From the IMG/VR virus record IMGVR_UViG_3300046323_000587, positions 162,481 to 226,480 of that record: a stretch of DNA of 64,000 bases; one strand, written 5' to 3'. The translations under genes were made by a program, and so were the position numbers. The notes beneath the pieces are model-generated. The model ran no database searches. It had not been told where the DNA came from and saw nothing but the letters and a program-made list of their open reading frames with translations. Within the stretch, counting starts at the first letter, position 1; each line of letters starts with the position of its first letter. Positions 1 through 32,118 of this stretch are shown piece after piece.

Positions 1-1251
1 TGTTCCGTAAAAAGTTCTTACAGATTCGTTATCTAAATTTCCAAAACTTCCAGCTGGTTGATCTGGTCTCTCAATATTATTAGTAAAAGGGGTTTTAGTA
101 CTTACTAATAAAGGAGAAATATGTTTAGAATTTTTTACATATTTATCAGGTATATATTTATGAGCATTGACACCTTCGTAAATTGATAATGGGTCAAATC
201 TTTTAAGAGATTCTTCATATTGTTCTTTTAATTCATTATTTTTTCTATTTAAATGTAAATCTCTTATTATAGAACTTGCTTCTGGAGTATAAGTGTAAGC
301 ATATTTTTTATCTGGAGTAGCCCAAAATAGTTCTAAATTTTTACTATATTCTGGTTTTACACGTACTTCTCCTTTTTCGGCTCTTTCTGAATTTGATTTA
401 CTTCCACCTCTATAATAAATATCTTGTACTTTACTACCCTTTAATTCTTTTTGTGCTTGTTCTGATTTAGTAGAAAGATAAAGTGCATCTGCTATATCAT
501 CATCTTTTGTATTTAAATCTTTATAATACTCTCTAGCACCAGGAATTTCATCTTTTATTTGTCCATACAATTTACTACCTCTATCAACTTCAATACCTTG
601 TTCTTTTGCTTGTTTAAGAAAATCAGTAAACATTTCAGTATTACTTACATAATCTTTAATAACAGGTTTAAATGTCTTTGCAGCATCTCCAGCTAATCCA
701 AATAATGGTAATACTCCTGCTAATGTCAATGGTGAAATTTTACCTGTTGATTTATATTCTTTCCAAGCATCAGAAGCACCTTTAACATCTCCAATTACTG
801 GTAACATATCTGCAACAGTATTAACAATAGATTTACTTACAGCTTTGTTATCCATTGTTTTATCAAGTTTATCTTTTGTATTAGGAACATTCACATTACC
901 TAATGTAGCAGTAGTATTCTTTTGTCTAGGTAAAAGATTAGCTTCTTGTGATTGTCTTTGAGACATACCAAATCCACTAGCATTACCGCCACGTTCTTTT
1001 TCTATACGTCTCTGAATAGCTAATCTCGTACTCATATCATCACCTTGTTCTTCTGATAGTTTTTCAATCTCTTGTTGTTGTTCTCTTTTATCAGATAATA
1101 AACCTTTATTGATTTTAAATTCAAAATAGCTGATTGCTCTACTATTTTTATGCTTAATAGCATTAGCATACATATTTCTTTCAACTGGTGAAAGATGCTT
1201 ATTAGCACCAACTTGTAATGCTTGTTTATCTCCGTCTTGATATTTATTCAT
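1..1251 (-). CDS. Polymorphic-effector-like protein, runs off the window edge: conserved N-terminal helical domain + pre-toxin-TG-like segment + ADP-ribosyltransferase-like (ART-PolyVal type) domain
   Basis: Not in ORF track; my translation from ATG 1251 is open to base 1: MNKYQDGDKQALQVGANKHLSPVERNMY...VADMLPVIGDVKGASDAWKEY...SKVQDIYYRGG...LFWATPDKKYAYTY...ISPLLVSTKTP. Confidence 0.65.
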   Translation of the reverse strand, partial: MNKYQDGDKQALQVGANKHLSPVERNMYANAIKHKNSRAISYFEFKINKGLLSDKREQQQEIEKLSEEQGDDMSTRLAIQRRIEKERGGNASGFGMSQRQSQEANLLPRQKNTTATLGNVNVPNTKDKLDKTMDNKAVSKSIVNTVADMLPVIGDVKGASDAWKEYKSTGKISPLTLAGVLPLFGLAGDAAKTFKPVIKDYVSNTEMFTDFLKQAKEQGIEVDRGSKLYGQIKDEIPGAREYYKDLNTKDDDIADALYLSTKSEQAQKELKGSKVQDIYYRGGSKSNSERAEKGEVRVKPEYSKNLELFWATPDKKYAYTYTPEASSIIRDLHLNRKNNELKEQYEESLKRFDPLSIYEGVNAHKYIPDKYVKNSKHISPLLVSTKTPFTNNIERPDQPAGSFGNLDNESVRTFYGT

Positions 1252-1256
1252 TGTCG

Positions 1257-3404
1257 TTATTTATTTAATAATTTTATATTCTTTAAGAACTTCTGTTTAT
1301 CAATATTAATCTTATCTTTCTTTAAATCTTTTAATACATAATCAGAGATTTCTTTTCTATTAGACTTATTTTTCACTTTATTAAGAATTGTAGTAATTCC
1401 TGAAATCATTTCTTTAATGTCTGATGTATTCTTTCCTCCTTTACTATACTTTAAAGGTTTTTTAAGTAACAACTCTTTTGGTTTCTTTACTACTTTGCCT
1501 ACATAATCTATCAAATCAGGTTCAATAATAGAGTGAGCTTCGTGTTCAACTGTACCAGGAATTTTATATCTTAGATTGTTCCCAATTTTATCGTACAATA
1601 TTTGTTTTGGTAGAAAAGAAAAATCATTAGTATTTTGAATACCAGTAAAGTATTTTGTTAATTCTGGAATATTATCCATTATCCAATCAGCTGAATTTTG
1701 ATTTGCATTATGATAATTATCAATAATTTCTTTTGTATGGCTTGTTTGAGGTTCTCTATTTAATTCATTTCCAATATGAGTTGTTTTACTTACTTTTTGT
1801 AAAGCGTGAGGAATTTCACTAATTAAATCTTGATAAGAATTTGGATTAACTGTAATCTTGTGTTCTATAGGGGTATAAAAAGCTCTTGTATTATTTTTAT
1901 TTAATTCAATTTCTGGATTTCCTGATTCTTCTAACAGTTGTTTAATCCTAACTTTATGAGAAGGAAGTAAATTTGAGTTAGACAGCAATTTATTTAAATT
2001 ATCTTTTGTCATTTGTTTTATAGAACTTAACTCTATCTTACTTCCTTTTTGAAATTTCATTAAAAATTTAAGTTTGTTTCCTTTTTTATATATTTGATTT
2101 TGTTGTTCTGGTGAACTAGACTTATTTAAATAAGAATTTATTCCAACTGCTGGTAAAGCTACTGCTGGTAATTTATTCATTGCAGAAACAAATTTTTTCT
2201 TGTCTTTAAGGTAACTTAATAAATCTTTTTTATCTTGTGAGAAGTTATTAAAGTTATTGTCTATATCTTGTTCTGTAAGTAATTTATAAGGATCTTTAGG
2301 ATTTATTTGATGTCTAATTTCTTGCATTCTTGCGGATATCTCTGTAGGTTTTAAAAGATATTCAGCATTTCTATAGTTTTTATCTTTATCTAAAATTTCA
2401 TTAAATTCATATAAAGGTTTATCTGAATGTAATTTTTTATAATTATCTCGAATATTGTCTAAATCAGTATTTCCATTTTCTGAAAATCCGTCAAGCAATA
2501 ATTTTTCTTGTTTTGGGTATATTAAATTATTACTTTGAGTTCTATTATGATCTAATTCATGTATTCCAGTATTTTTTATATCTGGCATACTAGGATCTAA
2601 AAAAACATTTGTTTCTGCTTTAACTATTTTATCTGTTGTTTTATTTAAATTAGGTATAGCAGAATATATTTCTTTATTTTCTATTGGAGTATCTCCTAAT
2701 AAAGGATAGTGTACGCCCATATTACCTTGTAATATATCTTGATCCTTAGTAAGTTGTGGTGTAATTGCATTAGTTCTTTTTCTCATTTTAGCTATATCTT
2801 CATTTATATACCCTACTGCTAAGGCCCTTCTTTCAAATTCTGGACTATTAATTTGTTTTCTGTATGCTTCTGTACCAGCATTTAATTCTTTTTGTGCAGA
2901 AGATTTAGTTAAATTATTTTTTAACTCTAAAGCAGCTTCTTTTACTTCTTTACCAAATTGATTTAATTTCTTTTTAGTTACTGTAACAACTGGTTTTACT
3001 ACATTTTTAGCTAAATTGGTTATTTTTTGTACACCTTTTTGAGCTAATTTTTTAACTACTGCTTTACCTAATAAACTTGTACCTCCAGTTAAAGCAGTTT
3101 CAGCTATTTGTTCAAAAGTATCATCTGGATTAATTTTACCTGTTGCCATACCAGTTTTAGCATCAATTAAGCCTTTATTAATTTTATCTTGTCTAGAGCC
3201 TTCTACAACTCTATTTGAAGCTTCTTTAGCTTTTTGTATCAATTCCCTATTAAGAAATACTCCTACATCATTTTTACCTTTACTAGGATTGTTTTGAGAT
3301 TCCCATAAAGAACGTGGTTTGTTGTTTCCTGTACGTTTAATATATTGTTCATAAGTCTCTACTGTTTTAGCAGGAAACTGAAATTTCTTGTATGATTTAA
3401 TCAT
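1257..3404 (-). CDS. Multi-module candidate virion cargo protein with two zincin-like metallopeptidase modules
   Basis: GIHELDH...YLLKPTEISARMQEIR; second degenerate module ISEIPH...VEHEAH; GGK-type tags at the N-terminus, between modules and near the C-terminus. Confidence 0.6.
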   Translation of the reverse strand: MIKSYKKFQFPAKTVETYEQYIKRTGNNKPRSLWESQNNPSKGKNDVGVFLNRELIQKAKEASNRVVEGSRQDKINKGLIDAKTGMATGKINPDDTFEQIAETALTGGTSLLGKAVVKKLAQKGVQKITNLAKNVVKPVVTVTKKKLNQFGKEVKEAALELKNNLTKSSAQKELNAGTEAYRKQINSPEFERRALAVGYINEDIAKMRKRTNAITPQLTKDQDILQGNMGVHYPLLGDTPIENKEIYSAIPNLNKTTDKIVKAETNVFLDPSMPDIKNTGIHELDHNRTQSNNLIYPKQEKLLLDGFSENGNTDLDNIRDNYKKLHSDKPLYEFNEILDKDKNYRNAEYLLKPTEISARMQEIRHQINPKDPYKLLTEQDIDNNFNNFSQDKKDLLSYLKDKKKFVSAMNKLPAVALPAVGINSYLNKSSSPEQQNQIYKKGNKLKFLMKFQKGSKIELSSIKQMTKDNLNKLLSNSNLLPSHKVRIKQLLEESGNPEIELNKNNTRAFYTPIEHKITVNPNSYQDLISEIPHALQKVSKTTHIGNELNREPQTSHTKEIIDNYHNANQNSADWIMDNIPELTKYFTGIQNTNDFSFLPKQILYDKIGNNLRYKIPGTVEHEAHSIIEPDLIDYVGKVVKKPKELLLKKPLKYSKGGKNTSDIKEMISGITTILNKVKNKSNRKEISDYVLKDLKKDKINIDKQKFLKNIKLLNK

Positions 3405-4188
3405 TGTTGTCTAATTTAAATTTATATAAAGAAAATAATTTTCCTCCTTTTGAGTAAGCAGGTATTACAAATGCAGCTCCAGAAAACCCTTTTGCATAAG
3501 TATTGTAATCTTTCCACTGAGCTGTAGACAATTGATTTTTACTATTTGCTTTTGGTTTTGCTGAATATCTTCCCATATCTTGATAAGTAAAATGCAGATC
3601 TTTTGGATTTAATTCATAATCTTTAATAATTTGTTCTCCTTGTTCTTTTAAAACTTCTGGAATTCCAGATACATCTATACCTATTTGTTTACCATTTTTA
3701 TCAGTAAAGAGATAAGTTACGCTTCCTCCACTAAATCTAGAAAAATTTTGATTTCCTGTACTAGATATACTTGTTTCTTGACCTTTTTTTGTTGGAATAT
3801 AATTAGATTTTTGTCCAATTTGCCAACCTGTAGACTTTCCTTTATTATTCCAGTCTATGTTTGCAAAAGAGTTAGATCTAACTGGTAATTTACTATCGTA
3901 ACCTTCTTCGTCTAAATATTTTTTGTTATTTAAATCAATTCCTTTTATATCTTTAAATTTTTTATACCTAACTAAATATTCTCCATTGAGTTGTTTTTTA
4001 TGTTGAGCTATATAAGTATCGGGAGTTTGTGGAATATCTGGTAAAAATATATCTTCGTACTTAGATTTTACTGGACCACTTTTCCAATCACTATGTTGTT
4101 TTGTATTTTTTTGATTTGGTGTAATGTCTCCGTCCATAATAAAATGAGATACACCTAATACATTATTTAATGTACTATCTTTAGACAT
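3397..4188 (-). CDS. Hypothetical cargo-cassette protein (probably the 3' part of a disrupted longer gene starting at 4862)
   Basis: 263-aa ORF ending in YSKGGKLFSLYKFK tag; the upstream sequence reads as protein in shifted frames. Confidence 0.5.
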   Translation of the reverse strand: MSKDSTLNNVLGVSHFIMDGDITPNQKNTKQHSDWKSGPVKSKYEDIFLPDIPQTPDTYIAQHKKQLNGEYLVRYKKFKDIKGIDLNNKKYLDEEGYDSKLPVRSNSFANIDWNNKGKSTGWQIGQKSNYIPTKKGQETSISSTGNQNFSRFSGGSVTYLFTDKNGKQIGIDVSGIPEVLKEQGEQIIKDYELNPKDLHFTYQDMGRYSAKPKANSKNQLSTAQWKDYNTYAKGFSGAAFVIPAYSKGGKLFSLYKFKLDNND

Positions 4189-4862
4189 TTCGTTTTAATT
4201 TAGGTAATACAATTGTTCTTCCTCCTGTAGAGTTATCAAAAGTTCTTTTAAAAGAGTGTAATTCTCCATTTTTATCTTTAGCAACTCTTAACAATTCATA
4301 AGATTCTCTATATTTCTCTTCAGGTGTTTTTGAATTTGATTTTGAGTTTAGTTTTGAATCTGATTTTGAATTGTTGTTAGAAGTAGATTTTTTAGGCTCT
4401 ACTTTAATTAATTTTGATCCTCATCTTTTGTAGTCAATTTATCTCACCCTCGTTTCAATCCTCCTACAACAACAGTAGCGTTATCAGGAGTAAATATCGA
4501 AGTAACTCTATTTACAAATGAAGGTTCTTGATCAGTTTTGCTTGAATTTTTATTCTCGTTTTGAGAGATAAAACTATTTTCTGTAGAACTTTGTTTAAAA
4601 TTGTTTTGAGTGTTTGGTAGTCTATTAAGAGTAATAGGAGTAGTTTTTTGTCTATTTAAAATAGATTTATTTAATTCTAATCTATTTTTATTTGTGTTTT
4701 CTAAATTATTTTGTTTTAGATAATCTTGGTAAGCTTTTTCTGTTTTTGGTCCCCAAGCTCCATTTATTTTTACACCTAAAACAGACTGTATTTTTTTATT
4801 TTTTCAACACCATTTTCATTTATTTTGCCATTATTTTGAAACTTTTCTATAAATTTTTTCAT
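4189..4862 (-). pseudogene. Disrupted 5' part of a cargo gene with a peptidoglycan-binding-like motif
   Basis: ATG 4862 MKKFIEKFQNNGKI; frameshift in A-runs near 4790-4805 into KIQSVLGVKINGAWGPKTEKAYQDY; in-frame TGA at 4444-4446; further shifts near 4415 and 4190. Confidence 0.55.
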
Positions 4863-5185
4863 TGATTTGTTTTAATTAAATTTTAACAAAGTAATACTGA
4901 TATGAGTTTTACATCATTTTTTTTACAATATTATAAATTATTTTATTTACTCTTCCTAATAGCTAGTAGCTTTATTTTGAACCTTAGTCAAATCCTTTTA
5001 TCTTTTCAGTTTCATTTCTATTAGTTTTGTAGTTAAGTTTTAGGTTTTAATTAAGATTTAAAAGTAAAGTTTAAAATTAAATTAGAGTTCAATATTTAAA
5101 AAGTAAAAGATAAAATAAATAGAGTTCTAAATGATAATATATGAGATTTTAATTACTTTATTGAATTAATAGAGTAACCTTATTC

Positions 5186-6115
5186 TTAATATTTATAATA
5201 AGTTTTAATACTAATAAAAGAAGGAAGATTAATATAAAGACATTGATTACGACCAATGAAACCAGATAAACCAGCTTCTGACATATAATTAAATATGGAA
5301 GAGTCATAAACTTGATGTTTAGTATTAATATAGTTCCTTTTTTCATCAAATAATAAACCAAGTTTTTTTAACTTATTGAAGATATTTTTAGCTTGTTGAT
5401 AAGTAACAGATTTAAGTTTTGCTAAAACACTTCTACTTGAAAAAGCAACAGGATTAATTAAATCTTTAAAATTGAATTTAGATAAATTAGAGAAGAAGCG
5501 CGAACCATATTTTGTAATATAATTATCAAAATTCTCGTTTATATGTTTAGTAAGACGAGAAATGATATTTTTATTAGCTTGATTTAATTTTTGCTCACTA
5601 GCTATGAAAATGCCTTTTTCTTTTAATTCATTCTTAACAATTTTATCAATAATAACTTTTTCTTGTTGTTTTTTATTTTGGTCAAGTGCATCTGCAATTA
5701 GAATTTCTTCTAGCATATACAAATCACCACAAGGTACTTTTAATACTCTAGTTTTAGCTACAACGATTTCTGAGTTTTCTGACCAAAATTCGTGAGTACG
5801 AAACACTTTTTTAGTAGCTTGAATAGTAAGATTATTTCCATCTAAAGTAACCCAACCAAGAGCAAGAAGATTTTTAATATGTTTTTTGACCCATTGCTCA
5901 GATGGTGTACGTAAATCACAATCATTTACTACAAATTGATTTATATTTCTAATATCAAGATATTGTGATTTATAGTTTAATATAACACCTCCAACATATA
6001 AAGCTTTCAATTTAAAAAAGAAACAAGTATTACTCATCATAGTATTGTCTAATACCAGATATCTTGATAAACCAACAGGAATAGAAATTTGAGTAACTTG
6101 TTTAATTTGTTTCAT
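5186..6115 (-). CDS. Hypothetical DNA-binding/replication-initiator-like protein with winged-HTH-like segments, inserted in the cargo cassette
   Basis: KKHIKNLLALGWV and SRSVLAKLKSVTYQQAKNIFNKLKKLGLL helices; lacks the cassette tag; flanked by AT-rich spacer. Confidence 0.4.
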   Translation of the reverse strand: MKQIKQVTQISIPVGLSRYLVLDNTMMSNTCFFFKLKALYVGGVILNYKSQYLDIRNINQFVVNDCDLRTPSEQWVKKHIKNLLALGWVTLDGNNLTIQATKKVFRTHEFWSENSEIVVAKTRVLKVPCGDLYMLEEILIADALDQNKKQQEKVIIDKIVKNELKEKGIFIASEQKLNQANKNIISRLTKHINENFDNYITKYGSRFFSNLSKFNFKDLINPVAFSSRSVLAKLKSVTYQQAKNIFNKLKKLGLLFDEKRNYINTKHQVYDSSIFNYMSEAGLSGFIGRNQCLYINLPSFISIKTYYKY

Positions 6116-6173
6116 TTTTATTATTTGTTTAAATGTTAAGAGAGTGTTATGATGTAAATATAACTAAAATAAT

Positions 6174-7172
6174 TTATCTTCTTTTGTCGAAACCAAATTT
6201 TTTTTGTTCTAGTAACAAATATATATAAGGATTTTCGTCTTGTGTATACTGTTTTTGTAAGGAACTTAATTTATTTAAAATTTCTTCTTTAGAATTTTTA
6301 TCTATATTTCTTAACTTATCAAAATCTTTGCTTAAAATTTCTTGTAAATTAGTTTTAAATACAGCTGGAGATCTTTTTTCTAATTCTGGCAATAAATTGA
6401 GGTTATTGATATAATCATCTTTAAGTTTTATTACATTTTTTAAATTATTTTTATCAGATAAAATTTTTAAAAAATTGTCGCTATCTGTAGCAGATTTTGA
6501 CATTTCAGATAAACCTATATCTGAAATATTTTTTATTGGATTAAATTTAGAGCTGATTTGCGAAACTAGTTTATTTTTTAACTGTTTCCCTAAAATAGGT
6601 ATAGTTTTTGCCCCAACAGTTATTAGTGATCCTACATCTGTCACTGGTTCAACTAAATTACTTACACCAGATATAGTATTCTCTAATGTATGTTGTTTAT
6701 TAGCTTCATTTCTTTTTTTATTGTATTGGGTTTGTTGATAAAGCTTTAAATCAGGGTCTTTAGTTTTATTTATCTTACGTTGAGCAACATAGTCTTCCTC
6801 AGTCTTTTCTGGACGGCCTGACACAGCTTCTTTAATATCTGATACAGCTAAACTAATAGAATTTCCTGATAAAGTATTATATAAAGGAATATAAGCTTTC
6901 CAAGAATTTGCATTAGATTGTTTTTCTACTAAATTTGTACCGTCTCTTTGATCTCTTCCAGATAATTCAGAAAGACGTTCAATTTCAGATTGTTGTTCTT
7001 TATTATCTTTAACTAATCCTTTATTAATCTTATTTTCAAAGTAATTTATTAATTTACTATTCTTTTTAGCAACTGCTCCTCTATACATTGCTTGTTCAGT
7101 AGCTGATAAATGTTTTTGAGCACCTTTATTCAAACCACCTAATTGATGTTTTAATATTGATTTTAATTTCAT
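6174..7172 (-). CDS. Paralog of the 1-1251 protein (shared N-terminal domain), different C-terminus
   Basis: GAQKHLSATEQAMYRGAVAKKNSKLINYFENKINKGLVKDNKEQQSEIERLSE aligns with GANKHLSPVERNMYANAIKHKNSRAISYFEFKINKGLLSDKEEQQQEIEKLSE. Confidence 0.7.
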   Translation of the reverse strand: MKLKSILKHQLGGLNKGAQKHLSATEQAMYRGAVAKKNSKLINYFENKINKGLVKDNKEQQSEIERLSELSGRDQRDGTNLVEKQSNANSWKAYIPLYNTLSGNSISLAVSDIKEAVSGRPEKTEEDYVAQRKINKTKDPDLKLYQQTQYNKKRNEANKQHTLENTISGVSNLVEPVTDVGSLITVGAKTIPILGKQLKNKLVSQISSKFNPIKNISDIGLSEMSKSATDSDNFLKILSDKNNLKNVIKLKDDYINNLNLLPELEKRSPAVFKTNLQEILSKDFDKLRNIDKNSKEEILNKLSSLQKQYTQDENPYIYLLLEQKKFGFDKRR

Positions 7173-7176
7173 TGTT

Positions 7177-7494
7177 TTATAATATAAATTTTAATAAAGA
7201 ATTTAACTTACCTCCTTGTTTCCAAGTTTTAAATCTTTTATGCCAATATAAAGGACTAAATGGGTCTTTTGCTTTTGAAGAATCTTTACCTCCCATTCTA
7301 TTCCAGAAGTTATTACGTCTATCTTTATTTTTATGTTGAGTAAAATCTTCCATTCCACGAAATCCTCCTGAAACTATTTTATATTTATCACCTTTCTTTG
7401 CTAATACCTGCCACTTTTTACTTGAATCAGCTGGAGCTGTTTTCTTAACTCCTACTTTATTAAATCCTTTCTTTATATATCTTTCTGGTATCAT
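7177..7494 (-). CDS. Small basic DUF5754/DUF6321-like viral protein
   Basis: KKWQV...KIVSGG.RGMEDFTQHK..DRR..F..R......DPFSPLYW pattern; C-terminal WKQGGKLNSLLKF tag. Confidence 0.55.
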   Translation of the reverse strand: MIPERYIKKGFNKVGVKKTAPADSSKKWQVLAKKGDKYKIVSGGFRGMEDFTQHKNKDRRNNFWNRMGGKDSSKAKDPFSPLYWHKRFKTWKQGGKLNSLLKFIL

Positions 7495-7508
7495 TTTCTA
7501 TTGATAAT

Positions 7509-8303
7509 TTAATTTATTTTAAATTTACTTAAAGAAGAAAGTTTAGCTCCTTTCTTAGCATATAATACACTAGATTTTTGTTTGTTGCTTACTAAACCAT
7601 TCATCATCTCAATAAATTTATTATCCTCAAAAGATTTAATTAAATTTCCCAGTTTCAATCCTTTATGTTTTGATTTAATCAATTCTAAATCTTCTAATTT
7701 AAACTTATCTTCTGGTTTTTTGTTAAGAAACTTTCTCATTCCCATTAACTCAGGATATAATTCGTGTTCTTGTCCATTATTAAATTGATCTACTTCTCCA
7801 GACTTAGTATAACTTTTAATATAATTCTGTAATTCAGAACTTTCATCAAAATGTGTAGAATGAGTAAATTCGTGAACACTTGTACGAGGAATAGATACAA
7901 TACCATCACCTAAAAAATCATTATATTTCTTAATAGTTTTAGGGAAGACTACAACTTGATGTTTATCTTTTAGGTAAGCTCCTGATACACCTTTATAATG
8001 ACGTTTAACTTTTTCAATATCTTCTTTTGTATATGGTGTATCATTAACAGGAGATTTTAAAAACATTTCTCGTTCTATTTCATCTTCAGGTATAACTGAA
8101 ACTGTATTTAATTTGTTTTGAATATTAGATAAAGTTGTATTAGCTTTTTTCTTGTTACCATACAACTTTATCATTTTATCTCTTGTTGTAGGATTATTAA
8201 ACCAATCTTTTACATAATTAAGATGTTCTTTTAAATCTGTTTCAGAATTTACAGAAGTATTTTGGACAGATTTTGTAGGTTTATCTTTGTCAAATTTGTT
8301 CAT
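7509..8303 (-). CDS. Zincin-like metallopeptidase, candidate cargo
   Basis: VHEFTHSTH then QEHELYPELMGMR; C-terminal YAKKGAKLSSLSKFK tag. Confidence 0.6.
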   Translation of the reverse strand: MNKFDKDKPTKSVQNTSVNSETDLKEHLNYVKDWFNNPTTRDKMIKLYGNKKKANTTLSNIQNKLNTVSVIPEDEIEREMFLKSPVNDTPYTKEDIEKVKRHYKGVSGAYLKDKHQVVVFPKTIKKYNDFLGDGIVSIPRTSVHEFTHSTHFDESSELQNYIKSYTKSGEVDQFNNGQEHELYPELMGMRKFLNKKPEDKFKLEDLELIKSKHKGLKLGNLIKSFEDNKFIEMMNGLVSNKQKSSVLYAKKGAKLSSLSKFKIN

Positions 8304-8348
8304 AGCATAAATTTGTTTTATATTGATTTTATTTGATTTATACGATTT

Positions 8349-8606
8349 TTATAAAACATTTGATCCAGAGTTTAACTTATTAATATCTTTACTTAAATCA
8401 GCTAATATCGATTTAATTTCAAGTTTATCTTTTTCTGTAAATGGATTGATTTTTTGAATTTTGTCAAAATTAGGTGTAATCTCAGTTGGGTTGTTTAATT
8501 TGATTCCTGAAATTGATTTTTGGTAAGCTTTTTTTGTAATATTGTCCCAAATACCTGTTTGAGAAATGTTGAGATATTTTTGTAATAATTTTATACGCTC
8601 TTTCAT
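8349..8606 (-). CDS. Small protein with peptidoglycan-binding-1-like N-terminus
   Basis: IKLLQKYLNISQTGIWDNITKKAYQ. Confidence 0.5.
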   Translation of the reverse strand: MKERIKLLQKYLNISQTGIWDNITKKAYQKSISGIKLNNPTEITPNFDKIQKINPFTEKDKLEIKSILADLSKDINKLNSGSNVL

Positions 8607-8626
8607 AATTATTAAATTATTATTAA

Positions 8627-9286
8627 TTAAGCACTAACTTGTGTATTAGGTCTTGGATGTAATCTCCAATACATTTGAGTGTATTTATTCACCATTCTTC
8701 CTATAATATCAGAAACCATCCAATTAGGTATTCCAGAAGGTGTCTCTCCATCTATTTTACAACAACCAAATTCTTCTAAATCTTTTGGATTAGCAGGAAT
8801 AAAATCTACACTAATATATTTAATGTTTTCAGTTGGAGGGTTAAATAAAAACCCATCTTTAAGATTTGGGTGAAACCAGACAAAAGGTTTTGTACGAGTA
8901 AATTTACCATAATCTTGTTGTTTCCAAGTTGGGCCTTTAACTATATTGAATACATATTCTCTATCAACAGTTCCTACAAACTTAATTGGATTTAGAACAT
9001 ATTGAGAAGGTTTAGGTAATTTAAAATGTAGTGTATTATTGAAGGAAGATACATTGCAACATAAACTTAAATCTTGACAATCTAATTCTAAACAATTAAT
9101 AGATTGTATTAATTCATTTTCTTGTAAAGTACCAGATAAAGATAATTGTTTAATTATTGCATCTCTTTCTACTAATATCTCATCTTGTAATTGTTCGTGA
9201 GAATAAGGTTCTTGTAAAGTTGCTCCTTTTAACCCAGCTAAAATATGATTATTAATTGCAGAAGCTATTTGTTCTAGAGTATTCAT
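8627..9286 (-). CDS. crAss-like tail ring/adaptor protein
   Basis: LEQIASAINNHILAGLKG...EQLQDEI...C..LDC and PRPNTQ end resemble crAss-like ring proteins; position in capsid block. Confidence 0.55.
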   Translation of the reverse strand: MNTLEQIASAINNHILAGLKGATLQEPYSHEQLQDEILVERDAIIKQLSLSGTLQENELIQSINCLELDCQDLSLCCNVSSFNNTLHFKLPKPSQYVLNPIKFVGTVDREYVFNIVKGPTWKQQDYGKFTRTKPFVWFHPNLKDGFLFNPPTENIKYISVDFIPANPKDLEEFGCCKIDGETPSGIPNWMVSDIIGRMVNKYTQMYWRLHPRPNTQVSA

Positions 9287-9289
9287 TGA

Positions 9290-10740
9290 TTAAAATTTAA
9301 TTTTATTAAATGAAGATAGTATACCTCCTAATTTAAAAGTCTTATTCATAATTTTTTTAATATTTCTTTTGTTTGTCATTTCGTCAGGTTTAATTTCTCT
9401 ATTAAACAAAGTATTTGCTATTTTAGCAAAGAATTTAGGTTGTTTTTTTGTACTATGATATAATTCATAAGTATCTGTATCTATATCTTCAGAGTTATTT
9501 TCTGCTAAATTTTTCAACTCTTTCCAATTTTTGTTTTTAAATTTTTTTTGTGAATTGTATTTACCTAAATCCTCTAAATTAAACATTGTAGTATATTTTC
9601 TAGCCAACCTTTCATCAGGAATAGATAAATAATCTTTATAAGGTTTTGTTGGTTCTCCATTTAACTGTTCACTTATTTTTTGTTCGATAGCTAAATTTTT
9701 ATGTAAATTTTTAATATAAGCATTTTCATCAGATTCTTTTTTTCCATAGGTAGATTCTAATATATATATATATTTTTATCTGAAAGATTGTTTCCTCCTC
9801 CTGTAGCTGCGTGTGAAAATTCGTGAGTACCTAAATATTTATATATATCTTTATAAGTTCTTTCTACATCTTTAGATTTATTGTAGGGACCTACTTCCAT
9901 AGGAAAAACAAATTCTTTTTTTGAAGGTAAGTTAATTTTTTTTGTATTATTAGAAAAAATTTGTACGTTAGGAGATGTTAAATTGTCTTTTGGGTAATCT
10001 AGCCCTGTATCTTCTAAATTTTTTAATCTTGTACCTATTTGTTTATCATTATATCCAGCAACTTTATTTAATTTTTGACCTCTTTTCGAAGTATAAAAAT
10101 CTATCAATCTTTTTTTATCGGGTTCGTAAGAATCTTTAAAAGATTTTTTATCGGTATAATTTTTTAAATTATAGCCCTCTAATTTTGTAGGTAAAGGTTG
10201 TTGAGATTTACCAGTTAATCTAATAATTTCAGAATCTACATTTTCTTTATGCCAACCAACAAGTTTTTGTTTATATTCTTCAGCATTATTTTTTGCCTCT
10301 TTTAAATTTTGAGTTATTTTTTCTATTTGTTGTTTATCTATAGGATCTAAAGAGTAGTTTTTTGGATCTTCCAATTTTTTAAAAGATTCTTTCCTATTAT
10401 AAAAATCTAAATCTTTTTCTAAGTCTTTTACATGATTTGTATACAATGTATTAACATCTGTTGGAGTTTTTTGTTCGGCTTTTAAATTTTCTAATTCATT
10501 AAGCAAATTTTCTCTATTCATTTTATTCCAAGGGTCTACATTTTCTTGAAATTCTTCTTCAGGTGTATCATAAGTAGGAATATCTGGAGCGTAATAATTA
10601 TTATATTTATCTTTTGAGTCTTTTTTAATATTTCTTTTTCCTTTAATATCTACATTTTTTAGTACAATAGTTGAATTTTGTAAAGTTCCATCAGGTTCTT
10701 GGTATTTTTTAATTTTTTTAAAACTATTTAGTTTTTTCAT
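9290..10740 (-). pseudogene. Zincin-like metallopeptidase cargo gene split by a 2-nt frameshift in a (TA)n tract (ORFs 9757..10740 and 9290..9607)
   Basis: THEFSH upstream; removing one TA at 9760-9773 gives DKNIYILESTYG...YLSIPDERLARKY in frame with the downstream ORF ending FKLGGILSSFNKIKF. Confidence 0.75.
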
Positions 10741-13917: not shown

Positions 13918-15306
13918 TTAGATATTTTCTTGCATAATAAAACCAGCATAAGGGTTGAATACAGCTACACCAGAGTAACCAATGATAGATTTAGTTGTAC
14001 CGTCAAAAGTAGAACCCATTGTACCAGAAGTCATACCATCAACTCCACCTAAACCTGGCAAAGTACCTTCAATCATTTCACGTCCTTTAAGAGTAAACAT
14101 AGAAACATTTGCACGTCCTTCTACCATTGTAGTATCAATAAACAAAGCATAACCATATTTATCATAAATTTCAGAAAGAATTGTATCAACAGTAAAGTTG
14201 ATAGTATTTCCCATCCATTGATAAGCTTTAAATGAACCACCAACTGTAATGTCTCCACCATTTTTAGTCCAGTAATAACCTCCATCAATAGCAGTAGACC
14301 TTAATTTATCTTCAAGAGCTTTAGAAATTTGTTTATATCCAATCCAGTTACAAACTACTGTGATATTATTTCCTGTTGTTTTACCTGTTTTTTTAACAAT
14401 ACTATCAATAGCATCTTCAAAAATAGAAGTAGTTAATTTTGTGTAGAAAAATTTATCGCAATAACGTTCAATTTGAGCTAATACCCCGTCACCTGAATCT
14501 AAAGCAGCTCCTGTAATACTATCGTGATCTAAGCAATTGCCGTTAATATCATGGTTATCTCTGCCTAACAACATTGAATTTTCTCTCATATAAAGGAATT
14601 GATCCAAGATTGCTTTTGCAGGTTGCTCCATTTTAAAATATTGTTTATTATCAGCTTGTCCAGCTTCAAAATAAATCATTTTAGCATCATTAGTCCAGCT
14701 ACCATCAACACGTACACGAGTAATATATCCACGGTGTTCTTCTAATTTCAACATACCTTTTTGATTACGTTGATCAACAGAACCATCAGATACGATATTT
14801 GAACGGAACATAGTTCTACGACCTCTTGTGGTGTATTGAGTATTCAGTCCTCTTGACATATCATTGTTTACTAAAACACAAGTATATCTCCAACGATTGT
14901 TATTCATTTTTTCTGGCGCTTGGATAACACGCAATTGAGTTACATTGTCTTCCAAAGAGAAAGTATCATTTGTTGCATAATAATTTTTCTCTAAAATCAA
15001 TGCAATAGGTTGTCTATTAGATCCACTTGAAGTACAATCTTCCATAATCGTTACTTTAGGAATCATATTAGTTTCAATTCTCCAAGTAAATTGCATTGCA
15101 TTAACAGATTCATAACTAGATTTACGATCTCTTACAATAACTCTACCTAAACCTTGTGTAATTGTAGAAATTGTCAAATCTTTTCTTGTTCTAGCCATTA
15201 AACCTAGTGCAGTTGTTCTTTTACCTAAAAGAGAGCTAATATTTTGTATGTTTTGTGTTGTATTCTGCAAATTTTGTGGTAAATCACTTAATTCAATTAC
15301 TCTCAT
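13918..15306 (-). CDS. Major capsid protein (crAss-like, HK97 fold)
   Basis: 462 aa; FTWRIE, N..WRYTC.L, EEHRGYIT..RVD.SW, GDGVLAQIE, GVAVFNPY motifs; follows acidic scaffold gene. Confidence 0.85.
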   Translation of the reverse strand: MRVIELSDLPQNLQNTTQNIQNISSLLGKRTTALGLMARTRKDLTISTITQGLGRVIVRDRKSSYESVNAMQFTWRIETNMIPKVTIMEDCTSSGSNRQPIALILEKNYYATNDTFSLEDNVTQLRVIQAPEKMNNNRWRYTCVLVNNDMSRGLNTQYTTRGRRTMFRSNIVSDGSVDQRNQKGMLKLEEHRGYITRVRVDGSWTNDAKMIYFEAGQADNKQYFKMEQPAKAILDQFLYMRENSMLLGRDNHDINGNCLDHDSITGAALDSGDGVLAQIERYCDKFFYTKLTTSIFEDAIDSIVKKTGKTTGNNITVVCNWIGYKQISKALEDKLRSTAIDGGYYWTKNGGDITVGGSFKAYQWMGNTINFTVDTILSEIYDKYGYALFIDTTMVEGRANVSMFTLKGREMIEGTLPGLGGVDGMTSGTMGSTFDGTTKSIIGYSGVAVFNPYAGFIMQENI

Positions 15307-15342: not shown

Positions 15343-16362
15343 TTAAATTGTAATATCATCAATACTTCTAAATCTTTTTTGTTCTGTTGTATTGTTATTT
15401 CTTGTATTATTATTTCTGTTATTATCTGGATTAATTATATTTTTTCCTTTAGATTGATATTTAGTTAAAGCTTCTTTTGCTCCTTCTATTCTAGCTAATT
15501 TAATTTGATTGTTTAAATCTCCAATAATTTTAGGACCAAATTCTAACCAATAAGCAGCTTTATATTGTTGTTCTGGACTTTCCATTAAATCGTTTATAAA
15601 AACTGTATATTCTGGGTCTTTTTCAGAAGGTTCTAATAATCTTGGTGCAAGATAATCTATAATTTGTTGATTGTTTTCATAACCGTCAATTTCATTTATA
15701 CTAAAAAAAGAATTGTAAATTTGTTGTTGTACTTGTTCAATTTCTTTTTCACTTTCAAGTTCTTGCTGATATCTAATATTTTCTTGTTGATCAAATTCTT
15801 GTTCTAATAAAGATTTTCTAATTCCATTTACTGTTTTGTCAAAAGAAGAACTGTCTTTCAGTCTAAAATACTGCTCTTCAATTTCAGATTCATCGCAATC
15901 AGGACATTTGTTAGCTAATTCTAGTTTTACCACATCTTCATCTGATAAGGTTGCAATATAACTATCAGAAAAATTATTTGTATTATCTAATACTCCTGCT
16001 TCTTTTAATAATTCTGCTACTGCTTCTAAATTACCTTCTTTGTAAGCTTGATTAAGTAATTCTAACACTTCATCTGAAGATCCTTCTTCTGGTTGATCAC
16101 CATTTAATTCTTTCTCTTGTTTTGAATATTCTGAAATTAATTTATCCATTTCATCATTTTGAGCAGAATCGTAAGTTTTAGTAGAATTATTTAATATACT
16201 AAATTCATCTAAACTATTTAAACCATCTAAAGAAAAAGACTCTTCTTCTAATTCTTTTCTAGAATCAATTTCATTTGTGGAATCATTTATGATGTTATCA
16301 TTTATTGTATTCAAATCTACATCATCTAAATTTATTGTTTCTATTCCATTGTTATTTTCCAT
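15343..16362 (-). CDS. Probable scaffolding protein
   Basis: Very acidic, coiled-coil, YKAAYWLEFG motif, immediately upstream of MCP. Confidence 0.6.
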   Translation of the reverse strand: MENNNGIETINLDDVDLNTINDNIINDSTNEIDSRKELEEESFSLDGLNSLDEFSILNNSTKTYDSAQNDEMDKLISEYSKQEKELNGDQPEEGSSDEVLELLNQAYKEGNLEAVAELLKEAGVLDNTNNFSDSYIATLSDEDVVKLELANKCPDCDESEIEEQYFRLKDSSSFDKTVNGIRKSLLEQEFDQQENIRYQQELESEKEIEQVQQQIYNSFFSINEIDGYENNQQIIDYLAPRLLEPSEKDPEYTVFINDLMESPEQQYKAAYWLEFGPKIIGDLNNQIKLARIEGAKEALTKYQSKGKNIINPDNNRNNNTRNNNTTEQKRFRSIDDITI

Positions 16363-16669: not shown

Positions 16670-18325
16670 TTAAATTAGAGTCAAAACTTTGGTTTTAGTA
16701 TCGTAAGTTAATGTTCCTACTGAGGTACCTAAATTTGTAGTTGCATCTCCATAACCTGGAGATACAGTAGTTGTAGATTTATTTATAGTTTGAGTATTTA
16801 CAAGAGTTCCTCCTCCAATAGAAGGAGTAAATGAATATACAGGAGTAAGAGTTAAACCTGAATATTGTAAAGCTTGTATTGTAATAGCTCCTGTACCAAC
16901 AGAAGTGTCCCACAAAGCTCTTATATCTAATTTAATTTGTGAAACTTTTGGATGTTTGGCAATCATAGTTTTAAAATCTATTACAAAAAATTCTTCTTTT
17001 GTTGTTGTAATATTAGGAGAACTTCCGCACCATACAGCATAAAATATATTATTTCCACTAATATTTTCTTTTAATTGAACATCTGTTGCAAATCCAGCAA
17101 TAAATCCACTATTAGGAATACGCTGTTCCATATAAGGAGTAAATTGAGAAAACATTAATCTAGTAAGTAAAACTGTTGTAGAACTAGCTGCTGTCCAAGT
17201 AAATTTTAAAATGACTAAATCTGTTGCAGGCCCAGGTATACATTTACCTTGAGTATTAGCAAGAGTTTGTTTATTTGCACTAAACCAAGTAGTTGCTTGA
17301 AGATCTGCGTCTGCTTGTGAAACTAAAGAAGTAAATTGACCTAATGTTGTAGAAATTGTTTCTGAACTTCCAACTAATGGAGCACTACAATTATTTTTTT
17401 GTACTAATTCTGTTATTACAACACTTCTATAAGTAACAATATCAATACAATTTAATCCAGCTTTTGCTTGTTGAGTAGCTAAATTTAAAGCTTGATTATC
17501 AGCATCAATTTGAGATATATAAGAATTAATTGTACCTGCTGATACAGTTGATGTATTACTACTAGGTTGTTTACCTGCTCCACAGTTTGCTGTAAAAGTT
17601 TGATCGGTATTAGTATATGTAATAGGTGTACAAACTCCTTGAATATTGGCTATAGATTGTCTAGTTCTATTTAATTCTGCAATAGCTTTATTATCTGCAT
17701 CAATTTGTGAAACGTAAGATTGAAAAGAATTTGCTGCAATATTAACTGTAACATTGCTAGGCGTTGTATTAATTGGACAAGTACTTCTTAGTAATGTAGA
17801 AGTTTGTAGTACATTATAAAATATTGGTAATGGAGTACAAGTACCTTGAGCATTTGCTAAATTTTGTTTATTGTTATTCAAGTAATTAATTGCTAAATTA
17901 TTTGCTTCAATCTGAGTTGCTGCTTTAAATGTATTTGCTGCAATTGTAATTGTTTCATTAGAACCTATATAACCAATAGCACAATTATTTCGTTGAATTG
18001 TTGTAGTTTGAATAACATTTCCAAAAGAAATTGAGCACACAGTTTCATCTTTTTTAGTTCTATTATCTAATAATATTTTAGCTTCTTCTATTGTTGAAGA
18101 TATTAAATTAGCTAAATTAGTAATAGAAATTGAATTTGGTATTATAGTTAAAATGCTTTTTTCTTTTGTTATTGTTTCTAAATCTGTATATGTAAAAAAT
18201 CCATCGTTGAGTCCACTACAAGTATAATTCTTCCAAGCAAATGATTTACGAGATTGCAAAGATTCAATTGTAATTGTAGTACAAGGATTAGATTTAATAC
18301 AAGAATAATTAATTTTAGTTATCAT
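16670..18325 (-). CDS. Fibre/decoration protein with four DUF5977-like repeats
   Basis: Repeated (R/K)NNC...GS...AA..F.S..SQ.DAD..A.......Q..AN.QG.C units. Confidence 0.7.
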   Translation of the reverse strand: MITKINYSCIKSNPCTTITIESLQSRKSFAWKNYTCSGLNDGFFTYTDLETITKEKSILTIIPNSISITNLANLISSTIEEAKILLDNRTKKDETVCSISFGNVIQTTTIQRNNCAIGYIGSNETITIAANTFKAATQIEANNLAINYLNNNKQNLANAQGTCTPLPIFYNVLQTSTLLRSTCPINTTPSNVTVNIAANSFQSYVSQIDADNKAIAELNRTRQSIANIQGVCTPITYTNTDQTFTANCGAGKQPSSNTSTVSAGTINSYISQIDADNQALNLATQQAKAGLNCIDIVTYRSVVITELVQKNNCSAPLVGSSETISTTLGQFTSLVSQADADLQATTWFSANKQTLANTQGKCIPGPATDLVILKFTWTAASSTTVLLTRLMFSQFTPYMEQRIPNSGFIAGFATDVQLKENISGNNIFYAVWCGSSPNITTTKEEFFVIDFKTMIAKHPKVSQIKLDIRALWDTSVGTGAITIQALQYSGLTLTPVYSFTPSIGGGTLVNTQTINKSTTTVSPGYGDATTNLGTSVGTLTYDTKTKVLTLI

Positions 18326-31554: not shown

Positions 31555-32118
31555 CTACCATTCTATAAAACCTCCTTCTGCTCCACCTTTATTCAATTTT
31601 TTATCTTGTTTTAATTCTTTTTCTGCAACTTTTCTAAGATTTTGTAACTCGTCCATAATAGTATTACTTTCTTTTAACATCTTCACTGCATCATAAGGTT
31701 GATCGATTCTTTGTCCTCTATGTGGACCTTCTTCAATATATTTATCAAAAGATACTGTTCTATAATGTTCACATAAAGTATCTACTAATTCCATTGAAGC
31801 AGAAATCATATTAAGAACTCTATTAGAATTAATTAATGAGTCAAATTTCTTTTCTGCTGCAAGATATTCAGGTTTTAATACATCTTCAGTAGTTAATTCA
31901 GAAGCAATTAAAGCTGATTCAAATCTTTTCTTTTTGGTTTCCTCTACGTGAGGAGACATTGGATCTTTATTAAGAAAAAGAAATGTAAAATATCTATTAG
32001 TTAAATCTTTATTTTTTGACTTATCTAATGCAACTAATTTTTTAAATTCTGGAATGAGTAATATACCTTCAATATTTAAAGTTGGTACAAAATTTTCATA
32101 TTCAAATAGTCTTAACAT
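31555..32118 (-). CDS. Conserved crAss-like protein upstream of terminase
   Basis: ILLIPEFKKL..LDKSKNK..., C-terminal KGG.EGGF; synteny. Confidence 0.5.
   Translation of the reverse strand: MLRLFEYENFVPTLNIEGILLIPEFKKLVALDKSKNKDLTNRYFTFLFLNKDPMSPHVEETKKKRFESALIASELTTEDVLKPEYLAAEKKFDSLINSNRVLNMISASMELVDTLCEHYRTVSFDKYIEEGPHRGQRIDQPYDAVKMLKESNTIMDELQNLRKVAEKELKQDKKLNKGGAEGGFIEW

Follow-up and report, generated by a model that had tools for sequence, protein, structure and literature searches.

A short Gly-Gly peptide shared by the ends of unrelated candidate cargo proteins in a divergent crAss-like phage

Why should a run of largely unrelated phage proteins carry the same short peptide at their ends or between their modules, and could this peptide serve to load them into the virion? 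The question arose from a 64-kb stretch of viral DNA, referred to here as the window. In the initial annotation, a block at its start was described as a cassette of effector-like proteins sharing a GGK/KLxSLxKF peptide not seen in ORFs outside the block, and this peptide was proposed to be a capsid-targeting or maturation-cleavage signal that allows effectors to be swapped into the phage head. The observation proved to be correct, whereas the interpretation is only partly supported. The genes (G1 to G12, numbered along the block and beyond the window start) and the peptides are compiled in Table 1.

Table 1. Positions of the cassette genes, their shared peptides and related features; coordinates are those of the window.
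Feature	Position	Strand	Sequence	Description
G1	9290-10740	-		Protein with an HEFSH motif, split by a frameshift
G1 N-terminal leader	10687-10740	-	MKKLNSFKKIKKYQEPDG
G1 frameshift	near 9760-9775	-		In a (TA)n run
G1 C-terminal tag	9293-9337	-	FKLGGILSSFNKIKF
G2	8627-9286	-		Tail ring protein R2, untagged
G3	8349-8606	-		85 aa, PG_binding_1-like motif, no tag
G4	7509-8303	-		264 aa, HEFTH motif
G4 C-terminal tag	7515-7562	-	YAKKGAKLSSLSKFK
G5	7177-7494	-		DUF5754 module plus an appended C-terminal tag
G5 C-terminal tag	7180-7224	-	WKQGGKLNSLLKFIL
G6	6174-7172	-		332 aa, N-terminal domain paralogous to that of G11
G6 N-terminal leader	7134-7172	-	MKLKSILKHQLGG
G7	5186-6115	-		309 aa, unknown function, untagged; interrupts the cassette
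Indel between assemblies	about 5105-5113			9 nt
G8	4181-4862	-		Three frame pieces: 4776-4862, 4444-4803, 4181-4420
G8 N-terminal leader	4821-4862	-	MKKFIEKFQNNGKI	Followed by a PG_binding-like motif
G9	3397-4188	-		263 aa, conserved cargo domain of unknown fold
G9 C-terminal tag	3412-3456	-	YSKGGKLFSLYKFK
G10	1257-3404	-		715 aa, two modules, HELDH motif
G10 N-terminal leader	3378-3404	-	MIKSYKKFQ
G10 internal linker	2034-2090	-	YKKGNKLKFLMKFQKGSKI	Full form of the motif
G10 further copy	1431-1448	-	YSKGGK
G11	1-1251	-		N-terminal 417 aa of a 709-aa protein
G11 N-terminal leader	1231-1251	-	MNKYQDG
G11 near-C-terminal copies	beyond window start		HSKGGS..., YKSGGTLKSLKKF
G12	just outside the window			Type IB topoisomerase
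ORF outside the block	31555-32118			Variant of the tag at the C terminus

Every peptide listed in the initial annotation was found on the minus strand. The C-terminal and internal copies follow the pattern [YWF]-x-K-G-G-K-L-x-S-L-x-K-F. In leave-one-out tests with a position-specific scoring matrix, five instances scored 13.7-29.1 bits, whereas the maximum over 14,509 positions of non-block proteins was 5.0 bits; the instance in G1 was borderline at 3.5 bits. Shuffled block proteins almost never reached the observed scores. In a six-frame scan of all 64 kb, simple patterns for the tag and for the N-terminal K-[FYH]-Q leaders hit only the block, although one variant of the tag lies outside it. 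An independent search for direct repeats returned the four C-terminal tags as the top repeat family. Some corrections were necessary. The ends of G1 and G8 lie in ORF pieces that are joined only across frameshifts, and NSTGGRTIVLPKLKR at the end of G8 is not a tag but part of a conserved domain. In addition, the series continues beyond window position 1 with the near-C-terminal copies of G11, with G12 and with a post-muzzle gene.

We first considered whether the similarity might be a by-product of a DNA-level element, such as a recombination junction, a ribosome-binding-like GGAGG or a regulatory repeat, or a chance product of Lys-rich composition. Seven of nine copies contain GGAGG, the tags form the top DNA repeat family, and the genome is Lys-rich with a G+C content of 27%. 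However, the DNA identity among the copies is only 72-79%, and synonymous positions differ (GGA/GGT, AAA/AAG, TTA/CTT/CTA, TCT/TCA/AGT). The Gly-Gly codons lie about 36 nt or more upstream of the next start, and other genes show no Shine-Dalgarno sequence. The peptide is also conserved in phages with other sequence versions and compositions. Explanations at the DNA level are thus very unlikely.

The window belongs to a divergent crAss-like phage, as indicated by matches to Pfam Crass_capsid and CrAss_Ring_2 (the latter in G2, E = 2.9e-11; G2 is a homologue of 24342-25064 in the comparison sequence L001). The block is an insertion of about 9 kb between the tail-ring genes R2 and R1, i.e. between the MCP-R2 region and the R1-muzzle region. 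A megablast search returned no close relatives among GenBank phages, the G9 domain was absent from 50,697 phage records, and DUF5754 gave only weak Vibrio-phage hits. A scan of IMG/VR with the exact tag of this phage (KGGKLxSLxKF) returned the phage's own contigs as the only real matches; the other 11 were chance or unrelated matches, for example a terminase motif. This precise version is therefore private to the phage.

The payload assignments of the initial annotation (ART-like, four zincin-like, PG-binding and DUF5754-like) held only in part. DUF5754 (PF19058) was confirmed in G5 (E = 4e-9, 36.8 bits against a gathering cutoff of 27.4). The label ART-like for G9 is not supported: no Pfam hit and no PDB sequence hit were obtained, and the AF2 model (pLDDT 82, disordered tail) had no fold match in PDB or BFVD (best E-values 0.11 and 0.04, TM below 0.26). 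The only recurring lead was phosphodiester glycosidase (NAGPA-like) at a TM of about 0.22-0.25 in both libraries, which is too weak to use. The sole match of a cassette protein to the portal-binding domain profile crAss_CARG1, in G9, was insignificant (E = 0.069, 13.7 bits against a cutoff of 27). Only three HExxH motifs exist instead of four, in G1, G4 and the N-terminal module of G10; the C-terminal module of G10 has only HEAH. The zincin label rests on these motifs alone, as no profile, PDB or HMM match was obtained, HMMs of three HExxH module families from polyvalent homologues did not hit G1, G4 or G10, G4 had no homologues, and its single-sequence AF2 model was unusable (pLDDT 40). PG binding is supported at the motif level only; G3 had no Pfam hit but matched the PG-binding-like region of a homologous polyvalent protein, P0123, in a phmmer search.

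Comparison with homologues showed that for three payloads, DUF5754, the G9 domain and topoisomerase IB, the tag is an add-on missing from homologues encoded elsewhere. A total of 137 homologues of DUF5754 were found. They align with G5 over residues 1-91 only, with 60-79% identity, and 69 of 75 end at the final Trp. Six carry W-x-x-G-G tails, and in 11 the module starts directly after a double Gly-Gly linker, at the residue that is Met+1 in stand-alone forms. G12 was identified as a type IB topoisomerase by its match to Pfam Topoisom_I (E = 1.4e-16) and the catalytic Tyr motif KKSYIDP. About 12 of its closest homologues carry Gly-Gly tags, whereas about 100 more distant ones end 10-20 aa after the catalytic Tyr. 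The G9 domain had 189 homologues, mostly modules of 400-4800-aa proteins, and Gly-Gly follows the domain in 38 of 47.

In relatives, the tag was tied to the cargo gene block. Tagged topoisomerases lie 1-3 kb after the crAss muzzle gene, and an untagged one lies among DNA ligase and early-type genes. Terminal tags occurred in 18 of 42 cargo-block genes but in 3 of 91 other genes (P = 3e-8); excluding this phage, the counts were 12 of 30 against 1 of 26 (P = 0.0013). In an independent approach, 2.9 million viral contigs of IMG/VR were scanned blindly with the pattern encoding one linker octapeptide, GGWLDKYQ. The scan returned 38 loci where about 1 is expected by chance. Of the 27 loci of at least 5 kb, 26 hold a crAss muzzle or cargo homologue, the motif ORF being the gene just after the muzzle. 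About 20 proteins of 78-1896 aa share the extreme C terminus ...GGWLDKYQ.

Tagged relatives of the three payloads are often fused into giant polyvalent proteins joined by the same Gly-Gly linker. The G9 domain and DUF5754 occur in one 1326-aa protein at the cargo position of a crAss-like contig. The single motif was seen 291 times against 118 ± 10 in shuffles, and the double linker 28 times against 1.8 ± 1.5. Polyvalent proteins (Iyer, Burroughs, Anand, de Souza and Aravind 2017; PMC5512222) are predicted to be packaged and injected, and homologues of the cassette modules are domains of such proteins next to virion genes, which also carry HExxH, glucosaminidase, LysM, YkuD and DUF5872 modules. 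The cassette shares the position beside virion genes, but most of its genes hold one module, whereas two to fifteen unrelated effector-type domains in one polypeptide are found in the homologues P0122-P0137 and arguably in G10 and G11. No mention of a Gly-Gly linker was found in the passages of that paper returned by a term search.

The cargo protein C1 (gp45) of crAss001 (Bayfield et al. 2023; PMC10172136) is encoded in the same neighborhood of ring, muzzle and cargo genes, and a 126-aa post-muzzle gene of the phage studied here matches its residues 396-457. The aromatic-x-x-G-G motif is enriched in gp45 (10 observed against 3.2 expected). Both structurally resolved pieces, residues 214-245 bound to R1/R2 and residues 425-552 bound to the portal, are bracketed by motif copies, and the portal-bound piece begins AFGGWL. 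In contrast to the tagged genes between R2 and R1, gp45 is one 842-aa chain encoded after the muzzle gene. That paper describes the cargo zones but does not mention the motif, and our term searches of it found no mention of a protease or scaffolding protein and no loading signal.

Taken together, the motif is best described as the inter-module linker and end-tag of Crassvirales cargo (ejected) proteins. Its full form is hydrophobic/aromatic-x-[KQ]-x-G-G, followed by a short basic amphipathic stretch (here K-L-x-S-L-x-K-F) and then [FY]-Q-x-G-G. In many crAss-like phages it joins modules inside giant polyvalent proteins encoded just after the muzzle gene, whereas in this phage the same modules (DUF5754, the G9 domain, HExxH proteins, PG-binding-like pieces and the topoisomerase) are separate genes, each keeping a copy at its N or C terminus. 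The analysis establishes that the motif is non-random, selected at the peptide level, specific to the cargo block and added relative to untagged homologues. What it does there is inferred from sequence alone, and the presence of any tagged protein in virions, the sufficiency of the tag for loading and its cleavage are hypothetical. With moderate confidence, we propose that the peptide is a position-independent docking signal, which would recruit a module into the capsid interior or the tail-barrel lumen by binding a putative repeated site on the portal, ring or muzzle proteins or on another cargo protein, with Gly-Gly as a hinge between tag and payload. It would be a functional analogue of the T4 capsid-targeting sequence. 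The tag is not universal among cargo, which speaks against a universal address: the virion RNA polymerase subunits, the patatin and 126-aa post-muzzle genes, G3 and other cargo-block proteins lack it. Furthermore, the virion cargo proteins of Cellulophaga phage phi14:2, verified by mass spectrometry, have at most two weak copies, so that this phage is not a useful test bed, and the AF2 pLDDT of the G9 tail is below 50 and gives no structural hint.

The main rival explanation is a maturation site at which a virion-associated protease would cut after Gly-Gly, removing leaders and tails and releasing modules from polyvalent precursors before packaging or after ejection. The enzyme could be one of the HExxH proteins of the cassette, the zincin domain of the giant polymerase-associated protein or an unrecognized one. 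In accordance with this view, module boundaries coincide with Gly-Gly, as seen above for fused DUF5754, and N-terminal leaders of 7-19 aa end in G-G or G. In T4-like homologues of DUF5754, the same position holds a hydrophobic-x-Glu site of the gp21 type (PMC9026906). HExxH modules co-occur with the linkers here, in the comparison sequences L008 and L009 and in crAss001 gp47, and are present in 32 of 84 long polyvalent homologues; polyvalent-protein zincins have been proposed to autoprocess (PMC5512222). On the other hand, no prohead protease, C39 peptidase or clan CE peptidase was detected among the ORFs of the window, which covers 64 kb of a contig of at least 141 kb, and the zincin fold of G1, G4 and G10 is inferred from motifs only. 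Residues 425-552 of gp45 were built with AFGG attached, the protein is treated as a 90.8-kDa species, and the virion gel bands include 85 and 100 kDa. An extreme C terminus GGWLDKYQ leaves only six residues to remove. Gly-Gly-directed processing occurs in double-glycine bacteriocin leaders cut by C39 peptidases and at sites cut by clan CE proteases in adenovirus, ASFV and poxvirus core proteins, where it matures virion core proteins. There, as here, short leaders or junctions end in G-G with an upstream hydrophobic residue. C39 leaders have hydrophobic residues at -4, -7 and -12 and an adjacent peptidase transporter. In the present motif, the aromatic residue sits at -5, not four residues before the cut as in adenain sites, and copies at C termini and extreme termini do not fit a leader. 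Cleavage remains possible but is considered less likely than docking.

A second rival is a passive flexible linker, which would only separate small modules so that ejected proteins can unfold and thread through the tail; copies at gene ends would be vestiges of gene fission at the only permissive sites, and their similarity within a phage would come from recent duplication or recombination at linkers. This would explain much of the same comparative pattern. The modules are fused in relatives and split here, G8 plus G9 being collinear with a single 611-aa homologue, the linkers are predicted to be disordered, and many cargo proteins do without the motif. Some cassette genes are also degenerating, which suggests that part of the cassette may be decaying. 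G8 is broken by a shift in an A7 run, by a TGA where homologues have Trp and by a further non-homopolymer shift, and the frameshift of G1 is present in a second assembly as well. Stop-codon recoding was rejected as an explanation, because stop use in the window is TAA 57, TAG 10 and TGA 3 and read-through gave nothing; the TGA in G8 is best read as a nonsense mutation. However, a passive spacer does not need a conserved aromatic and basic context or a fixed K-L-x-S-L-x-K-F stretch. G5 ends in GGKLNSLLKF and the next gene, G6, starts with MKLKSILKHQLGG, so that each keeps its own K-L-x-S-[LI]-L-K stretch rather than half of one linker. Tags were added to topoisomerase IB and DUF5754, which are single-module proteins with untagged relatives, and an identical 20-aa C-terminal peptide is kept on proteins of very different length. 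We therefore consider a purely passive linker unlikely. The idea of a sliding-clamp-binding peptide (Q-L-x-L-F-like termini) was dropped because the motif lies in late, structural-block proteins and inside polyvalent cargo proteins.

The closest parallel is the capsid targeting sequence of the phage T4 internal proteins IPI-III and Alt, a short peptide shared by otherwise unrelated small proteins encoded in a cluster among late genes and thought to let the phage load varied proteins into the head (PMC9026906). In a T4-like contig, DUF5754 carries a leader resembling this sequence at the same position and sits in a cluster of genes with such leaders, so that one payload family occurs with either type of label, which makes the analogy of an address label concrete. 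The T4 sequence is strictly N-terminal, about 10 aa long, ends in hydrophobic-x-Glu and is removed by the gp21 protease. The peptide described here is basic with Gly-Gly; leaders of 7-18 aa exist on G1, G6, G8, G10 and G11, ending in Q-x-G-G or G rather than Glu, but the motif also occurs at C termini and internally. No gp21-like protease or scaffolding core was found in the window. In the literature library searched, no paper mentions this motif, and hits for DUF5754 and DUF5872 concern giant viruses and polinton-like viruses only.

A signature that marks cargo-block proteins across several crAss-like lineages gives a way to list candidate ejected proteins in uncultured phages, including enzymes such as topoisomerase IB, HExxH proteins and cell-wall-binding modules. 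It also offers a concrete, mutable element for testing cargo loading in cultured crassviruses and links crAss-like cargo to the polyvalent-protein theme and, through DUF5754, to T4 internal proteins. The most far-reaching possibility, which is not excluded but remains doubtful, is that the tag is a portable virion-loading signal of Crassvirales, the functional counterpart of the T4 sequence, docking modules to the portal, tail-barrel or muzzle interior and perhaps trimmed by a packaged zincin. In that case, the motif alone would predict the ejected proteome of uncultured crAss-like phages, here including a type IB topoisomerase, the two resolved pieces of gp45 would be docking units flanked by tags, and foreign proteins could be loaded into crAss-like virions for delivery into Bacteroides. 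If sufficient for loading, the tag would be a tool for putting proteins into phage particles that infect gut Bacteroidales.

Two further features of the cassette were observed. The N-terminal domains of G6 and G11 are 58% identical over 62 aa in a BLASTP comparison and were also recovered in the direct-repeat search. G7 is flanked by the largest gaps in the cassette, and the indel between assemblies lies next to it.

The left two-thirds of the 64-kb window, which has 25-34% G+C, are one minus-strand late operon of a divergent crAss-like phage. Profile searches against Pfam identified the major capsid protein (Crass_capsid, E = 2e-22) and the tail ring protein R2 (CrAss_Ring_2, E = 3e-11). The nearest GenBank phages share only 29-34% identity in the major capsid protein, and there is no nucleotide-level relative. 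A second assembly from another sample differed from IMG/VR contig 3300046323_000587, of which the window is an identical part, by one 9-nt intergenic indel. With these contigs the gene series was followed beyond window position 1, where it continues with G12, a type IB topoisomerase (Pfam Topoisom_I, E = 1.4e-16), ring protein R1, a 172-aa gene, the 1717-aa muzzle protein (crAss_MUZ, E = 7e-36), a gp45-like 126-aa gene, a patatin-like phospholipase (E = 2e-24) in the cargo position without a terminal tag, and a further tagged protein. In the relative MT835470, R2 and R1 are adjacent. G3-G12 is therefore an insertion of about 9 kb between the two ring genes, and G1 is a second insertion in front of R2.

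Coordinates of the tagged block in transcription order, of genes around it and of loci used for comparison (window positions unless a contig handle is given; L011, contig reaching beyond window position 1; L005, crAss001; L014, T4-like metagenomic contig)
Feature	Position	Strand	Description
G1	10740-9290	-	HEFSH motif; frameshifted in a (TA)n run
G1 frame change	9757-9775	-	Within the (TA)n run, right after HEFSH
G2	9286-8627	-	Tail ring protein R2
G3	8606-8349	-	85 aa, PG-binding-like motif
G4	8303-7509	-	HEFTH motif
G5	7494-7177	-	DUF5754
G6	7172-6174	-
G7	6115-5186	-	309 aa, untagged, no credible family match
Gaps flanking G7	4863-5185 and 6116-6173		Largest non-coding gaps of the cassette
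Indel between assemblies	about 5105-5113		9 nt
G8	4862-4181	-	Three frame pieces
G8 lesions	near 4795; near 4444; near 4422	-	A7-run frameshift; TGA aligned with Trp of homologues; non-homopolymer frameshift
G8/G9 overlap	4188	-	ATG/TAA
G9	4188-3397	-	Conserved domain, see text
G10	3404-1257	-	715 aa
G11	1251 to beyond position 1	-	709 aa in full
G12	L011:12130-12942	same as cassette	270-aa type IB topoisomerase, catalytic KKSYIDP, C-terminal Gly-Gly tag
Patatin-like phospholipase	L011:19914-20816		Just after the muzzle gene
Major capsid protein	13918-15306		Crass_capsid
Gene upstream of the capsid gene	15343-16362	-	339 aa, scaffold position
DUF5977 protein	16670-18325		Four DUF5977 repeats
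Portal	26088-28412
Protein with variant tail	31555-32118	-	187 aa, outside the block
Cpn10-domain protein	44821-45627		268 aa, C-terminal Cpn10 domain
T5orf172/MUG113 gene	53915-54454		GIY-YIG-like
OmpA-domain protein	57728-58978		416 aa, signal-peptide-like N-terminus
crAss001 gp45	L005:21987-24515		Cargo protein C1
Cluster of small genes	L014:8790-10303		Leaders resembling the T4 capsid targeting sequence
Post-muzzle proteins	L033-L069 (IMG/VR loci)		78-1896 aa, nearly identical 20-residue C-terminus

The observation of the initial annotation, that largely unrelated proteins of this block share a short peptide at their ends or between modules, was confirmed, and all of the peptides it quoted are present. 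A 15-column scoring matrix was built from the C-terminal-type copies and tested leave-one-out. Five copies scored 13.7-29.1 bits, whereas the best of 14,509 positions in the other 60-odd proteins of the window scored 5.0. The G1 copy was borderline at 3.5 bits, and the supposed copy at the end of G8 failed. The N-terminal K-[FYH]-Q leaders were found on five block genes and on one of about 60 other genes. Outside the block, where the initial annotation had seen no copies, the 187-aa protein ends in KLNKGGAEGGFIEW, a variant double Gly-Gly tail, and may be another tagged protein near the presumed terminase and portal genes. The 339-aa gene just upstream of the major capsid gene contains TKYQSKGKNII, a tag-like K-Y-Q-x-x-G-K, about 30 residues from its Asn-rich C-terminus.

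At the DNA level the four C-terminal tags are 72-79% identical and differ at synonymous sites. The conservation is therefore on the peptide. The internal copy in G10 shows the full unit, which consists of Y-K-K-G-N, then K-L-K-F-L-M-K-F-Q, and then K-G-S. C-terminal tags are its first half plus the middle stretch, whereas N-terminal leaders are the middle stretch plus its second half. Adjacent genes each keep their own middle stretch, as G5 ends GGKLNSLLKF and G6 starts MKLKSILKHQLGG, which is not what a simple split of one linker would leave.

Homologues of three payloads were then examined. G5 has 137 DUF5754 homologues that are 60-79% identical over residues 1-91 only. Of 75, 69 end at the final Trp and six have W-x-x-G-G tails. 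In 11, the module begins directly after a double linker such as YKKGGRLMEAYYMKNGG, at the position that is Met+1 in 17 stand-alone forms. One fused form lies in an 89.8-kb crAss-like contig between the muzzle gene and the giant polymerase gene. Its neighbours are rich in aromatic-x-D-G-G, and one of them ends QMRKGGRLMYAYKFR, the same kind of tag as in the window phage.

For the G9 domain, an exhaustive HMMER search found 189 homologues, almost all of which are modules inside proteins of 400-4800 aa. In 38 of 47 the domain is followed within 7-9 residues by G-G, and a second unit of the form GG-x-L-x-K-Y-Q-x-GG often follows. One such protein (1326 aa) contains DUF5872, DUF5754, the G9 domain and a glucosaminidase. 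It sits right after the muzzle gene of a crAss-like contig, and another does likewise. Across the 149 homologues used for counting, the single motif occurred 291 times, against 118 +/- 10 in shuffled sequences, and the double linker 28 times, against 1.8 +/- 1.5.

The dozen closest homologues of the topoisomerase G12 carry Gly-Gly tags at one or both ends, whereas about 100 more distant ones stop 10-20 residues after the catalytic Tyr. Two tagged ones lie 1-3 kb after crAss muzzle genes, and an untagged one lies among DNA ligase and other early-type genes of a different 78-kb phage. The tag on G12, its position between the tail-ring genes, and the location of tagged relatives in crAss cargo blocks and of untagged ones elsewhere suggest a virion-carried topoisomerase, as in poxviruses. 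A passive linker that merely serves threading would explain the fused and split patterns, but it does not explain the specific conserved context or the addition of tags to single-module enzymes, and we regard it as unlikely.

Specificity for the cargo block was assessed across six crAss-like loci. Terminal tags occurred in 18 of 42 cargo-block genes and in 3 of 91 other genes (P = 3e-8). Without the window phage the counts were 12 of 30 against 1 of 26 (P = 0.0013), and a stricter pattern gave 10 of 42 against 0 of 91. As a blind test, IMG/VR (2.9 million contigs) was scanned for DNA encoding one common linker octapeptide, GGWLDKYQ. The scan returned 38 stretches, where about one is expected by chance. 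Of the 27 retrieved loci of at least 5 kb, 26 contain a homologue of a crAss muzzle protein or of a cargo-block protein, and the motif-bearing ORF is a separate gene just downstream of the muzzle. About half of the instances are the extreme C-terminus of proteins that differ widely in length but share an almost identical final 20 residues ending NFTNYNKPTKGGWLDKYQ, a strikingly conserved terminal peptide on otherwise variable proteins. Others lie at residues 41-48 or are internal. The window's own exact version (KGGKLxSLxKF) is private to this phage.

In crAss001 the cargo protein C1 (gp45) is enriched in the motif, with 10 copies observed against 3.2 expected. G-G pairs in gp45 end at residues 21, 210, 264, 334, 428 and 563, and residues 425-436 contain AFGGWLNTQGG. 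Two segments of gp45 were resolved by cryo-EM (PMC10172136). Residues 214-245 are bound to rings R1 and R2 and are bracketed by FSAYGG (205-210) and AFAEGG (259-264). Residues 425-552 are bound to the portal, and this segment starts at AFGGWL (425-430) and is followed by MFAYGG (558-563). If these aromatic-x-x-G-G copies are cut sites, the tail-bound and capsid-bound pieces need not be one chain spanning the portal, as proposed in the structure paper. The same paper reports an unassigned 14-residue helix bound to the muzzle.

In T4, a 10-residue N-terminal capsid targeting sequence loads unrelated internal proteins and is removed by gp21 (PMC9026906). DUF5754 homologues in other contexts carry leaders such as MNFSEFLKESE or MKYLLKFNEFLNES. 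One of them sits in a T4-like metagenomic contig (gp32, UvsW, Cpn10), in a cluster of small genes whose products start MKTYKEYLLE, MKHISTFSQFLNE and MNFSEFLKESE, all resembling the T4 capsid targeting sequence. The last is the DUF5754 protein, which suggests that DUF5754 is an internal head protein in T4-like phages. The same payload therefore carries a T4-type address in T4-like phages and the Gly-Gly peptide in crAss-like phages.

Taken together, we favor a docking or loading tag with a Gly-Gly hinge, although we hold this reading to be only about as likely as not. It is favored by the extreme C-terminal conservation, the retention of a full middle stretch on both sides of gene junctions, the ordered AFGGWL at the start of the portal-bound gp45 domain, and the lack of any recognizable maturation protease in the window. 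Cleavage after Gly-Gly remains a serious rival, albeit a less likely one, because module boundaries coincide with Gly-Gly and HExxH proteins co-occur with the linkers. The proposal of the initial annotation that the tag is a capsid-targeting or maturation-cleavage signal is partly supported. The analysis itself demonstrates the conservation of the peptide and its association with cargo-block genes, whereas every functional step, including docking, loading and cleavage, is inferred, none of these proteins having been shown to be in a virion. No description of this motif was found in the literature searched. A short peptide shared by virion-loaded proteins is already known from T4. What is new is the sequence, its positional freedom, its use as the joint of polyvalent cargo proteins and its restriction to crAss-like cargo blocks.

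Some payload labels of the initial annotation did not hold. G9, which had been called ART-like, is not detectably an ADP-ribosyltransferase, as a confident AF2 model (pLDDT 82, pTM 0.82) had no fold match in PDB or BFVD. Of four modules labeled zincin-like, HExxH was found in G1, G4 and the first module of G10 only, and no profile or structure supported a zincin fold. G8 and G9 together are collinear with one 611-aa homologue (P0123). G8 is interrupted by two frameshifts and a TGA where homologues have Trp, and both assemblies carry these interruptions. Because the window shows ordinary stop-codon use, they are lesions or assembly errors, not recoding. The change of frame in G1 is likewise identical in the two assemblies and could be an assembly error, a phase-variable tract or a pseudogene. 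The untagged gene G7 sits in the middle of the cassette, and the only difference between the two assemblies lies in one of the gaps that flank it.
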